Shown: positions 51,520 through 62,982 of the stretch, in pieces | Position numbering within the stretch: position 1 is the stretch's first letter | How the letters are laid out: each line of letters starts with the position of its first letter | Assembly: GCA_002269645.1 (NCBI GenBank) | Contig: NIVC01000036.1 | Coordinates: 395,961 to 459,960, forward strand | Length of the DNA: 64,000 bases | Source of the DNA: Macrostomum lignano | Taxonomy: Eukaryota | Reading direction: 5' to 3' | Notes under the pieces: generated by a model | Database searches by the model: none | Told to the model about the DNA's origin: nothing | What the model saw: the letters and a program-made list of their open reading frames with translations, nothing else | Translations under genes and position numbers: made by a program

Positions 51520-54500
51520 TTAACCAAAGTGCGGCCGCAGCTCATCAAGCAGGTCGCCCGGCTGCAGTCCGGCGTGTCGCAGCGCCGGCTCAAATTCCGC
51601 GTTCAGTGAGGCGAGGTGAGCCTGAAGTCGCAAGCTCCAGTTGAACACTTCTCGATCGAAGTACTTCTCTGTAAATCGGGATGGAGCCGGAGGTACTTAA
51701 AGTGTTAGGCTAAGATGTTAAGTACTGTATGAAAATTATATGTAAGACTTTTTATAAGTGACTCACTATCCTGATAAGATCTGAGACAGATCAACGTTTT
51801 GTGTTGTAGCGCTCTGAGCACAGTGGTAGACGAGCCTGCTGACTCGGCGAGCATATCCGAGCATTCTGAAACGTTTCAAACGATGTTTAATAAATCGTTT
51901 GGGTTGTCCTAGGAACCAATGGACCTAATGACATCGTGGGCATTAGTTACGAACCGAATGACATTGTGCGGAGCTTCTAGGAATTGAAAGACTGAAAGAT
52001 TGAAGATTGAAAGAAATTGGAAGTGAGGAGTTTCTAGGAATCGAAGGACATTGTAAGGAGTTTCTAGGAATCGAAGGACATTGTGGGAAGTTTCTAGGAA
52101 TCGAAGGACATTATGAGGAGTTTCTAGAAATCGAAGGACATTCTGAGGATCGTGTAGAAATCGAAAGACATTGTGAGGAGTTTCTAGGAATCGAAGGACA
52201 CTGTGAGGAGTTTTATGGAATCGAAGGACACTGTGAGGAGTTTCTAGGAATCGAAGGACATTGTAAGGAGTTTCTAGGAATCGAAGGACATTATGATGAG
52301 TTTCTAGAAATCGAAGGACATTATGAGGATCGTCTAGAAATCGAAGGACATTGGGATGAGTTTCTAGGAATCGAAGGACATTGTAAGGAGTTTCTAGGAA
52401 TCGAAGGACATTGTAAGGAGTTTCTAGGAATCGAAGGACATTGTAAGGAGTTTCTAGGAATCGAAGGACATTGTGACGAGTTCCTAGAAATCGAAGGACA
52501 TTGTGAGGAGTTTCTAGAAATCGAAGGACATTATGAGGATCTTCTAGAAATCGAAGGACATAGGGATGAGTTTCTAGAAATCGAAGGACATTGTGAGGAG
52601 TTTCTAGAAATCGAAGGACATTGTGAGGAGTTTCTAGAAATCGAAGGACATTATGAGGATCGTCTAGATATCTAAGGACATTGGGATGAGTTTCTAGAAA
52701 TCGAAGGACATTATGAGGAGTTCCTAGAAATCGAATGACATTGTGAGGAGTTTCTAGAAATCAAATGACATTATGAGAATCGTCTAGAAATCGAAGGACA
52801 TAGGGATGAGTTTCTAGGAATCGAAGGACATTATGAGGATCGTCTAGAAATCGAAGGACATTGGGATGAGTTTCTAGAAATCGAAGGACATTATGAGGAT
52901 CGTCTAGAAATCAAAGGACATTGTGAGGAGTTTCTAGGAATCGAAGGACACTGTGAGGAGTTTCTAGAAATCGAAGGACATTATGAGAATCGTCTAGAAA
53001 TCGAAGGACATAGGGATGAGTTTCCAGGAATCAAAGACATTGAGGCGCCTTTGTTAGCTGTGAAAGGACGGCATGAGCGGCCGGATTTGCGCTAAACGGA
53101 CTCACCAGTTCCATAGGCCTGCAGAGCGCAGATGAGGCCCAGCTCAACCAGATCGAACTGAAACCGAGAAATCGGCGGGCTAGCCAGTCTGGCCGCGTGA
53201 GCCCCGATCACGGTGGCCAGCTGCGGGAAGCGACGCCGCAGTCGGACCATCTGGACGCTGGTTGGCGACTCCAGCTCGGCGTCCTCGCGGCCGATGCTGG
53301 CGCCGTCGAACGCCTGGGCGAGCAGCAGCACCGGATAGAAGCTTCGAGCCAGCAGGCGGCTCCTGAGTCGCCAATCGAGAGTGGCCAGGCCCGGCAGCTG
53401 CTGGCAGAAGGTCTGGACAGCGCGGCCAAGCTGACGGAGGCGACTCAGCACGGCCTTGGAGCCGGTTTCGTCAGAGTCTTCGTCATCAACGGATTCTTCC
53501 GCATCTTGCAGCGCCACAGCCCGCAGAGCCGCCTGCAGCCTTGAAAATGCTTGCCTGACGCTTTCAATGAAATCGTTGTCGGCTGATGAAGCTGCAAAAG
53601 AGGCAGCTGTTGAGGATTCTGGTTGATTATGATGCAGCGCCTGATGCTGCTGCTGCTGCTGTGTCTGGCAGGCGAGGTAGTCCTGATGCTGCTGATGCTG
53701 AGCTGCCGGATGCTGCAGTTGAAATCCCTGCATCTGCTGGTGATGCTGGTGCAGCATCTGCTGCTGCTGCTGCAGTTGGTGATGCTGGAGGTGATGAGGC
53801 TGGCGATGCTGTCGGGTCTTGTTGATCTCTTTGATCTCCTGGGCGCACAGGTGCTTCACGGCATTCGGCTGGCGACCGATTCGGCTGCCTAAGGAATTCG
53901 AAAGACGAAGGAATTCAGTAATTTGCTTATCGGTCTACTTGCAGTAGGATTTTCAGGCTGTCGTGTATAGAAATGTTCCAGATAAAAAACCACGTGATAG
54001 CATGATACGGCCAGAAACTAAGATATAAACTTTTGATCACAATATAAAAGATTAACATTATGGGGTACACTAGGACAATCACTGAGATACTAAGACAGGC
54101 TCTAAGACAGGCACTGAGACAGGCACTAAGACAGGCTCTAAGACAGACACTGAGACAGACACTGAGACAGACACTAAGACAGACACTGAGACAGGCGCAA
54201 AGACAGACACTAAGACAGACACTAAGACAGGCACTGAGACAGACACTAAGACAGGCACTAAGACAGACACTGAGACAGACACTGAGACAGACACTGAGAC
54301 AGACACTGAGACAGACACTGAGACAGACACTAAGACAGACACTAAGACAGGCTCTAAGACAGACACTGAGACAGGCGCAAAGACAGACACTAAGACAGGC
54401 ACTAAGACAGACACTGAGACAGACACTGAGACAGACACTGAGACAGACACTGAGACAGACACTGAGACAGACACTGAGACAGACACTGAGACAGACACTA

Positions 54501-60500: not shown

Positions 60501-62982
60501 CCAGTTTCTTTATTTTGACCTCAGTGTTACTGCTACCAAAGTGGGAGCGCGATATGGTCATTCAGTTTTTTTGTATGGAATATTTTCGACATTTCTGACT
60601 TCATTTAGGGGTGAACTCTGATTGCTTATTATTTTCTTTGCATTTTCTGTCTCAGTCGGATGGACTTTTAAATTGTAGTTGTATGTTTTCTATGGCTCCT
60701 TCGGCGAACCCTGATCCTAAGGAACTTGCTGAAAAAATGCTTTTCAAAGTTGAACTACAAACTCTAGAGGAAATTTAGGGCGATTTAGATTGCTCCTAGT
60801 GCTTCTGCAGTCGTCATGAATAGCAGGGAGTTCAACCGGTGAAAATCGAGTACGAAGAGGTCAAAGTGCGATTCGGGCTCCAATTGCGCACATCACTGCG
60901 CCTCGGTTGTGTGCAATGCAGTTTAAAGGAGAAAGTGCAGCGCAGTATGAAATTGAGAGCTGCATGCACGTATTGCATTGGCTAAACTTTTGGGCTGCAA
61001 GCCTCAATATTGGACCATCTCTTAGTGCTATTCATTTTCTGAATTATTGAAATCTCACCTGATAAATAGATACAATTATAAAGATAGATAGATAGATAGA
61101 TAGATAGATAGATAGATAGATAGATAGATAGATAGATAGATAGATAGATAGATAGATAGATAGATAGATCGATAGATAGATGGATAGATAGATAGATAGA
61201 TAGATAGATAGATAGATAGATAGATAGATAGATAGATAGATAGATAGATAGATAGATAGATAGATAGATAGATAGATAGATAGATACAGAAATAGATAGA
61301 TAGATAGATAGATACATAAATAGATAGATAGATAGATAGATAGATAGATAGATAGATAGATAGATAGATAGATAGATCGATAGATAGATAGATAGATAGA
61401 TAGATAGATAGATAGATAGATAGATAGATAGATAGATAGATAGATAGATAGATAGATAGATAGATAGATAGATAGATAGATCGATAGATAGATAGATAGA
61501 TAAATAGATAGATAGATAGATAGATAGATAGATAGATAGATAGATAGATAGATCGATAGATAGATAGATAGATAAATAGATAGATAGATAGATAGATAGA
61601 TAGATAGATAGATAGATAGATAGATAGATAGATAGATAGATAGATAGATAGATAGATAGATAGATAGATAGATAGATAGATAGATAGATAGATAGATAGA
61701 TAGATAGATAGATAGATAGATAGATAGATAGATAGATAGATAAATAGATAGATAGATAGATAGATAGATAGATAGATAGATAGATAGATAGATAGATAGA
61801 TAGATAGATAGATAGATAGATAGATAAATAGATAGACAGACAGACAGACAGGACAGAACTCACCAGGCGGGAACATATTCAGCATGAGGCACTTCTTGTA
61901 CCGGCAGTGCTGGCAGTGAGTCCTGGTCTCCTTGGTAACGTCGCAGCGGCCCACCTTGCTGCAGCTGTATTTGATCCCCAGCCCGCCCTGCATCCCGGCC
62001 CTGGTCGACCTGATGAAAACTTCTTGCAGGCCTCGCACACGAAGGCGCCGCAGTGAAATCCGGCCGCGGTGTCGCCGCAGACGTCGCAGGCTCGACGTTC
62101 GACAGCCTTGAAGAGGCACAGCTCGCCGGGGTCGCCCGCTCCTCCTGGCGTCGCTGAGTGCTCATCTGAGCCAGACGGCTGTCTTTGATGCTGCTGCGGC
62201 AGCTGCGGTGGCGGCTGCTGCTGCCGCTGCTGAAGCTGCTGATGGTGCATTTGTTGATGGTCCGCAAACTGCTGCTGCTGATACTCATGGTAAGTCTGCT
62301 GGTGATATGCCTCGGCGGTGCTGAGGTAGATCGGTGAGCCATCCTGGTGCTGGACTTGTTGCTGCTGCTGCTGCTGCTGCTGCTGATGATGATGATGATG
62401 AGGATGATTATGGAGCGTCGATGGATGCTGCAACTGGTGTTGCTGATGCTGGTGATACTGCATGGCTGCTGTCAAATTGCTGCTGCTGCTGCTGCATCGC
62501 TGAGCAGTCGTTCGTCTCGAGGTTGACGCGTTGGCGGCCACTTGCACATGACTGGCTGCGATGTACTCTGGTGGAAGATGAGGCATCGCCTGCTGCTGCT
62601 GGTGCTGCTGGAAGGCTGCAGCCGGTGCCCCGTTGCTGACCAAGGTGTAGCTGGCAAAGTACACGTGCGTCTGGGCGGGTACACCGTCGAGTCCGTGACC
62701 GCCTGACCAAGAGGGTTCTACTGGCAAACAGCTGGGCTTCACGTCTTGCAGGAGCAGAGATGAAGGAGTCTGGCCTGGCTGCTCTGGCGGACTGTGTTGT
62801 TGTTGCTGCTGCTGCTGCTGCTGAGGATGCTGATGAGTCAGAGTGAAGTAGCTCATCTGATGTCCAATTGGGCTGATTTCCATCGACTTCTCTAGGAAAC
62901 TGTCCGATGGCTGAAGCTGCTGTTGCTGTTGCTGTTGCTGTTGCTGCTGCACTGTCCGAGAGCACGCTGTTATTGTCATCAT
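51520..62982 (-). CDS. 2DBD: Nuclear receptor with two tandem DNA-binding domains (2DBD-NR), ~768 aa, 5 coding exons; a 1-nt frameshift in DBD1 as assembled
   Basis: Exons 62982-61864, 57353-57247, 56891-56744, 53888-53106 and 51668-51520. DBD1: [23 protein letters not shown](F)FIRS...[25 protein letters not shown] (P-box CEACKK). After a short linker, DBD2: [27 protein letters not shown]...[25 protein letters not shown] (P-box CEGCKG). Then [12 protein letters not shown], a poly-Q hinge and a degenerate LBD. Adding one T at 62016-62019 makes all phases consistent (2307 nt). Confidence 0.92.
52025..53040. repeat. 30-bp minisatellite (TGTGAGGAGTTTCTAGGAATCGAAGGACAT variants) in 2DBD-NR intron 4
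   Basis: Directly visible; later units contain stop codons in the [10 protein letters not shown] frame. Confidence 0.95.
54080..55072. repeat. 12-bp minisatellite (AGACAGACACT[A/G]) in 2DBD-NR intron 3
   Basis: Directly visible. Confidence 0.95.
55905..56690. repeat. 30-bp minisatellite (GGTGATGGTGCTGCACTGAAGGATCTGGGA) in 2DBD-NR intron 3
   Basis: Directly visible. Confidence 0.95.
56960..57170. repeat. Polypurine (GGAGAG-like) tract in 2DBD-NR intron 2
   Basis: Directly visible. Confidence 0.88.
57410..58290. repeat. ~19-23-bp minisatellite (GTCCCGATGTGTCTTTGTTTC) with a 111-bp higher-order unit in 2DBD-NR intron 1
   Basis: The marker GTCCGTCCC recurs at 57451, 57562, 57673 and 57784. 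Confidence 0.93.
58975..59490. repeat. CT-rich low-complexity array (CATCTCTCCC variants)
   Basis: Directly visible. Confidence 0.88.
61083..61835. repeat. (GATA)n array near the 5' donor of 2DBD-NR intron 1
   Basis: Directly visible. Confidence 0.97.

Follow-up and report, generated by a model that had tools for sequence, protein, structure and literature searches.

A Macrostomum lignano nuclear receptor gene with two tandem DNA-binding domains: a contig-end copy of Ml2DBD-NRA1 with probable consensus errors in exon 1

A spliced receptor gene and its copies

The DNA analysed here, referred to as the window, is a stretch of 64,000 nucleotides from Macrostomum lignano assembly Mlig_3_7 (GCA_002269645.1), and its base 64000 is the end of contig NIVC01000036.1; positions 41520-64000 are 100% identical to the last 22,481 bases of that contig. 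Between 51520 and 62982, on the minus strand, the window carries a spliced nuclear receptor (NR) gene that encodes two tandem DNA-binding domains (DBDs), and this gene is a copy of M. lignano Ml2DBD-NRA1. Once four bases are put back at three sites in exon 1, the six window exons translate exactly to PAA89302.1 (802 amino acids, aa), the protein listed by Wu & LoVerde in 2021 (PMC8363021) and named Ml2DBD-NRA1 by them in 2023 (PMC10497141); the preliminary description, made from the letters alone, was thus right to call the gene a 2DBD receptor. The gene is already known: its protein is in GenBank, was counted by both of these published 2DBD receptor surveys and was named in the more recent one. 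A full-text literature search for the locus name Mlig015099 found no paper.

All exon boundaries derived are of the GT-AG type with compatible phases (Table 1). The preliminary description had overlooked one of the six coding exons, a 99-nucleotide (nt) exon of the ligand-binding domain (LBD), and its five-exon model is superseded by PAA89302.1, in which that exon is the source of 34 residues between LQAYGT and KYFDRE that the shorter model lacks. The exon sequence also occurs in the annotated product of the window locus itself. In a protein search, the DBD-to-LBD part of the five-exon model matched Mlig015099g1 with 94% identity at 100% coverage, the remaining 6% being due to the missing exon. 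Only about 1 kb separates the ATG from the contig end, so the promoter lies largely outside the window.

In Mlig_3_7 the locus is annotated as BOX15_Mlig015099g3 (g3), with product PAA92993.1 of 471 aa. A protein cluster look-up gave four Mlig015099 copies in this assembly, the other three being g1 (BOX15_Mlig015099g1; PAA89302.1, 802 aa; contig NIVC01000155.1), g2 (PAA93023.1, 801 aa) and g4 (PAA81052.1, 804 aa). The g1 and g3 loci are 99.35% identical across 14.2 kb of DNA, and their coding sequences (CDS) differ by no substitution in 2405 nt and by three indels; exon 1 is identical at 1119 of 1123 bases, with the four missing bases as the sole differences, and exon 2 is 100% identical. What sets the two apart is three small exon 1 deletions, found in g3 only, and tandem-repeat arrays of unequal length in the introns. 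Intact open reading frames (ORFs) are kept in g1, g2 and g4 with few amino acid changes, g2 being clearly the more diverged copy and g4 having few private substitutions. Identity among all four copies is above 97%. The DV1 line is described as having undergone a recent chromosome or genome duplication, with which the four-copy pattern agrees.

The g3 product was cut to 471 aa because of a frameshift in exon 1: PAA92993.1 has as its first residue the Met of MQGGLGIKY (window 61993), a little past the frameshift, and its downstream exons are identical to those of the window model.

Table 1. Features of the receptor locus and its intron repeats in window positions (a slash marks an exon boundary or, for the frameshift, the break in the protein)
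Feature	Positions	Strand	Content
Coding exon 1	62982-61864	minus	ATG 62982-62980; A/B region (about aa 1-299), whole of DBD1 and first part of linker; ends in phase 1, G/gtgagt
Coding exon 2	57353-57247	minus	cag/ acceptor; rest of linker and first zinc finger of DBD2 to CEGCK/gtgagt; first Cys codon 57312-57310
Coding exon 3	56891-56744	minus	ctgcag/GGC TTC TTC CGC (GFFRR); second zinc finger of DBD2 and start of C-terminal extension (GMSSD); ends in phase 1, G/gtgagg
Coding exon 4	53888-53106	minus	GRIP box RIGRQP, then NAVKH, Q/H-rich hinge and LBD helices about H1-H8; LBD start near 53580 (DNDFIESV)
Coding exon 5	51865-51767	minus	99 nt; about LBD helix 9; flanks tttcag/ and /gtgagt
Coding exon 6	51668-51520	minus	LBD C-terminus (about H10/11) with AF-2-like end; stop TAA 51522-51520
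Introns (5)	61863-57354, 57246-56892, 56743-53889, 53105-51866, 51766-51669	minus	
DBD1	61874..62088	minus	First C4 zinc-finger pair, P-box CEACKK; wholly in exon 1, ends CLMLNM; contains the frameshift
Frameshift	62018..62019	minus	One C absent by comparison with g1, g2 and g4; breaks KKF/FIRS just after the DBD1 P-box
Two more deletions	62465..62520	minus	G missing at 62519/62520, CA missing at 62465/62466; frame out, then back
(AGAT)n repeat	61082-61848		About 192 copies
12-mer repeats	58989-59448		
22/111-mer repeat	57398-58286		
(GAGAGG)n repeat	57007-57172		
30-mer repeat	55904-56684		
12-mer repeat	54085-55074		
30-mer repeat, different unit	52023-53042		

Domain architecture and family membership

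The encoded protein runs in the order A/B region, DBD1, linker of 17 aa, DBD2, GRIP-box extension, hinge and LBD. Pfam zf-C4 (PF00105) matches it twice (E-value, E, 1.6e-43), and a regular-expression search found C-X2-C-X13-C-X2-C followed by C-X5-C-X9-C-X2-C in both domains, at aa 300-361 and 389-446 of 802, in agreement with the two complete C4 zinc-finger pairs, spread over three exons, that had been read from the letters. The P-boxes CEACKK and CEGCKG are both present, the latter in a DBD2 that is split across exons 2 and 3, and the short linker between the domains and the poly-Q/His composition of the A/B region (299 aa, with 78 Q and 29 H) and of the hinge (about 101 aa, with 29 Q and 15 H) were likewise correctly described; the condensate-forming activation domains that the preliminary description saw in this composition are speculative.

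By comparison with the published definition of group A 2DBD receptors (2DBD-NRA; PMC10497141), the protein has the defining P-P module, EACKK in DBD1 with EGCKG in DBD2; a linker within the stipulated 17-22 aa; and, after a pre-GRIP segment of five residues, a GRIP box of the form RXGRQ(P/S), here RIGRQP. Neither group B module, LPCKS-EGCKK or EACKS-EGCKG, occurs in the window protein. The fifth residue after the GRIP box is H (NAVKH), which is the ancestral NRA1-type state (PMC10497141), and the group A placement of the identical protein PAA89302 comes from a published Bayesian tree (PMC10497141). Judged on its sequence, the window protein shows every 2DBD-NRA feature tested, and in part only for the LBD signature and the activation function 2 (AF-2) motif.

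About 40 homologues with CEACKK-CEGCKG and RIGRQ(P/S) were found in flatworms, molluscs, a nemertean, rotifers, acanthocephalans, a bryozoan and amphioxus, with inter-DBD linkers of 15-22 aa in nearly all cases. The 'limited set of invertebrates' to which the preliminary description assigned such receptors is out of date, the 2023 survey having 2DBD-NRs across Spiralia, echinoderms, chordates and some nematodes. Close likeness is also seen with platyhelminth 2DBD-NRA1 (2DBD-gamma) proteins, such as Schistosoma mansoni Sm2DBD-gamma and the Cichlidogyrus and cestode homologues, which share the five-residue pre-GRIP segment, RIGRQP and H at the fifth position after it. By contrast, the DBD1 inter-finger loop (window 61950-62020) has 21 aa in the M. 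lignano copies and 15-18 in nearly all 2DBD-NRA homologues examined; the very Q/H-rich A/B region and hinge also set the M. lignano protein apart, as does a far more divergent LBD that has no Pfam match and in which a conserved YNYFNF turn is replaced. In a second M. lignano paralogue, seen with the same pattern match, the DBD1 inter-finger loop is still longer and is rich in Q, L and H.

Among solved structures, DBD1 is closest to the DBDs of ERR (NR3B; E 2.4e-16), whose P-box EACKA is one residue apart from EACKK. The closest structures to DBD2 with its extension are the DBDs of Rev-erbA-alpha, ROR-gamma, PPAR-gamma and TR (E 2.8e-23 and weaker), and it is Rev-erbA-alpha and ROR-gamma (NR1D/NR1F) that DBD2 and the GRIP box most resemble. 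These matches fit the published view that EACKK is like the EACKA of ERR and EGCKGFFRR is NR1-like; the EACKK P-box itself is specific to 2DBD-NRs (PMC1810520). Unlike the window protein, Rev-erb, ROR and ERR have a single DBD, and a heme or sterol ligand cannot be inferred for the window receptor from its likeness to them.

The C-terminus is a full-length and colinear but unusually divergent NR LBD. Its 240 residues align colinearly with the LBDs of other 2DBD-NRs, with exon 5 under helix 9, and a profile built from 16 other 2DBD-NR LBDs, the window excluded, matches the window LBD with an E of 1e-9 over positions 4-206 of 235. The family profile matches structures of the Rev-erb, RAR, LXR, ROR and VDR LBDs (5e-34 and weaker), with Rev-erb, RAR and LXR as the closest. 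The alignment places one segment under the NR signature FAKKxPGFxxLxxxDQxxLL, FPQL under FPxF, and further segments under LDxxExxLLxxL and PQLFxEMF; in the signature (Ti) segment the F, PG-L, L and LL positions are retained, with departures at positions 2 and 3, D/S and Q/K. An AlphaFold model of the LBD (predicted local distance difference test score, pLDDT, 80.7; predicted template modelling score, pTM, 0.81) is all-helical save for a low-confidence loop at residues 94-107, and the top 50 Foldseek matches of this model in the PDB are all NR LBDs, at template modelling scores of 0.55-0.68.

Several observations pull in the other direction. Pfam run on the assembled protein returned zf-C4 only, and no LBD family (PF00104) at E up to 1; a phmmer search with the lone LBD sequence against PDB sequences returned no solved NR structure. 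The structural model was built from an alignment of family members and is hence not independent evidence. The NR signature is present in part only, with FCQ instead of FAK and LR instead of DQ; the AF-2 core is LLDELR, with R at the last hydrophobic position of the expected phi-phi-x-(E/Q/R)-phi-phi; and at LBD residues 94-107 the YNYFNF turn conserved in the family gives way to the loop, with pLDDT below 50. Identity between the window LBD and other family LBDs is 13-19%. The phmmer search also returned two PDB matches to a 'Tet4 variant', which were taken as chance, as they cover 34 residues and fail the per-stretch cut-off.

Exon 1 deletions and the transcript

The preliminary description had noted a frameshift, and this is real in the window sequence at 62018/62019, where the window reads AAGAAGTT-TTCATC and the other copies read AAGAAGTTCTTCATC, encoding KKFFI; it is, however, not the sole deletion, as exon 1 has three. 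Reading from the ATG, a stop is reached after 367 codons, inside DBD1. The deletions of G (62519) and CA (62465) garble 19 codons of the A/B region. All three deletion sites are intact in g1, g2 and g4. A tiny intron was considered at the frameshift and rejected: there is no room for one and there are no splice signals, the other copies simply having one extra base.

Changes private to each copy were counted over 8.5 kb of non-repeat alignment of the four loci, with tandem repeats masked. This gave 8 indel events and 3 substitutions for g3, 15 and 2 for g1, 30 and 135 for g2, and 10 and 28 for g4. The truly diverged copies g2 and g4 thus have an excess of substitutions, and the g1/g3 pair differs almost solely by indels of 1-2 nt. 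Of the eight indels private to g3, seven are crowded into 62018-63877, less than 2 kb from the contig end, and this clustering suggests lower consensus quality there; consensus depth falls at contig ends. Mlig_3_7 is a Canu assembly of PacBio data, polished by Pilon with Illumina and RNA-seq data, and is highly redundant, with 180 Mb in near-identical duplicated blocks (PMC5730564). Short-read polishing is unreliable in duplicated sequence of 99% identity, because short reads map to more than one place.

Given a CDS without substitutions and seven of eight private indels near the contig end, assembly error is likelier than a real pseudogene, and we consider the frameshift to be most likely an artefact, left by long-read consensus errors that persisted in the last 2 kb of the contig, where coverage is poor. 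If the deletions are errors, the locus would encode an intact receptor of 802 aa. Set against this, the deletions are known from the assembled consensus and not from reads, and hence cannot be demonstrated to be errors, and the deletion at 62018 (TT-C-TT) is no simple change of homopolymer length. The latter point also speaks for the deletions being real and g3 a genuine, very young pseudogene or truncated allele, which would at best make a 471-aa product without the A/B region and the first finger of DBD1, a one-and-a-half-DBD receptor. The deletions are private to g3 and stand in the deposited assembly even though Illumina and RNA-seq data went into its polishing; exon 1 has three of the eight private indels, against an expectation of about one for its length; and with four genomic copies the loss of one would be tolerated. 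A pseudogene is, however, at odds with a CDS of 2405 nt free of substitutions and with only three private ones in 8.5 kb; with private 1-2-nt indels that exceed substitutions in g1 and g3, the reverse of g2 and g4; and with the crowding of the indels into the stretch where coverage falls, in duplicates that polishing treats unreliably. We therefore regard a genuine pseudogene or truncated allele as unlikely, and it is somewhat less likely again that g3 is a duplicate which has only just lost its function after recent polyploidisation of the genome and which might express an N-terminally truncated receptor. If that were true, the truncated product would be a natural 'single functional DBD' variant and could compete with the intact copies for DNA sites or dimer partners.

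The two DBDs might also come from distinct transcription units, of which the upstream gene would stop after DBD1 and the downstream one would encode a conventional one-DBD receptor, with fusion only in silico or through a trans-spliced polycistronic precursor. M. lignano does use spliced-leader trans-splicing, and about 7% of its assembled transcripts are multi-gene precursors (PMC5730564); the intron between the DBDs is 4.5 kb long; and the joining of the exons was judged here from the deposited annotation and from splice phases. Yet exon 1 runs without an in-frame stop to a consensus donor in phase 1, and the cag acceptor of exon 2 has the phase to match. The GenBank annotation is based on a genome-guided transcriptome (StringTie/TACO with de novo assembly) whose transcripts were split where experiments supported a trans-splice or poly(A) site (PMC5730564), and it nevertheless leaves the CDS joined: a single CDS spans both DBDs in g1, g2 and g4, and in g3 it crosses the junction of exons 1 and 2. 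As this transcriptome-based annotation joins the exons in all four copies, the refuting case named in the preliminary description, in which transcripts always leave exon 1 unlinked to the exon at 57353, is unlikely. In addition, the same DBD1-linker-DBD2 arrangement, with linkers of 16-22 aa, is found in about 40 proteins of several other phyla, some of them cloned as cDNA, and two separate units are in our view extremely improbable.

Surroundings of the gene, predicted function and meaning

Long tandem-repeat arrays take up most of the four longer introns, and the copy number of these arrays varies among the four gene copies. Long ORFs within the introns, on both strands, were rejected as genes, being translations of these repeats. 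More minisatellite and microsatellite arrays occur across the window (e.g. 7991-9277, 33447-34895 and 49273-50307), and an (AGAT/TATC)n array at 48.4-50.3 kb shares its unit with the intron 1 array; the repeat load agrees with a published figure of 15% simple or tandem repeats for the M. lignano genome. Elsewhere in the window, a single-exon ORF of 319 aa at 29078-30037 (minus strand), with a charged tail that resembles a coiled coil, matches the AIG1 family (GIMAP/IAN-like GTPase, PF04548; E 1.7e-36). A second ORF, of 204 aa at 2220-2834 (plus strand), matches ATG27 (PF09451; E 9e-12) and has a weaker match to the mannose-6-phosphate receptor family; it probably represents the final exon of a larger gene. 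Over the whole window, neither Rfam at gathering thresholds nor the tRNA search with ARAGORN gave a match.

By analogy with its family, the protein would be a sequence-specific transcription factor in which the P-box helix of each DBD may recognise a half-site of the AGGTCA type. As in Rev-erb and ROR, the GRIP box that follows DBD2 would add contacts in the minor groove on the 5' side of the DBD2 half-site, and the short, fixed linker of 17 aa is predicted to force the two half-sites to be adjacent. The LBD would mediate homodimerisation and not heterodimerisation with RXR; LBD homodimerisation without RXR, a class I behaviour, has been shown experimentally only for Schistosoma Sm2DBD-alpha and Echinococcus Eg2DBD-alpha.1 (PMC1810520, PMC10497141). 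Such a dimer could then engage up to four half-sites, and the Q/H-rich A/B region and hinge may act as activation or co-factor-binding regions. Our literature search found no paper with DNA-binding data for any 2DBD-NR. Taken as a whole, the explanation that joins a copy of Ml2DBD-NRA1, the mechanism proposed here and exon 1 indels that are most likely consensus errors is one in which we have high confidence.

As a discovery the locus matters little; the useful remainder is the correction of the g3 annotation and a caution on indels at contig ends. PAA92993.1 is likely an artefactual truncation of an 802-aa receptor, and this should be kept in mind when 'partial' receptors in M. lignano are counted. 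The locus illustrates how the redundancy of Mlig_3_7 and indel errors at contig ends can together mimic pseudogenes, and other Mlig_3_7 gene models that touch contig ends may be truncated likewise. M. lignano is tractable for transgenesis and RNA interference, and the animal would be a good system for studying the response elements of 2DBD receptors, their ligand and the function of the extra DBD, an opportunity that was already evident from the literature.

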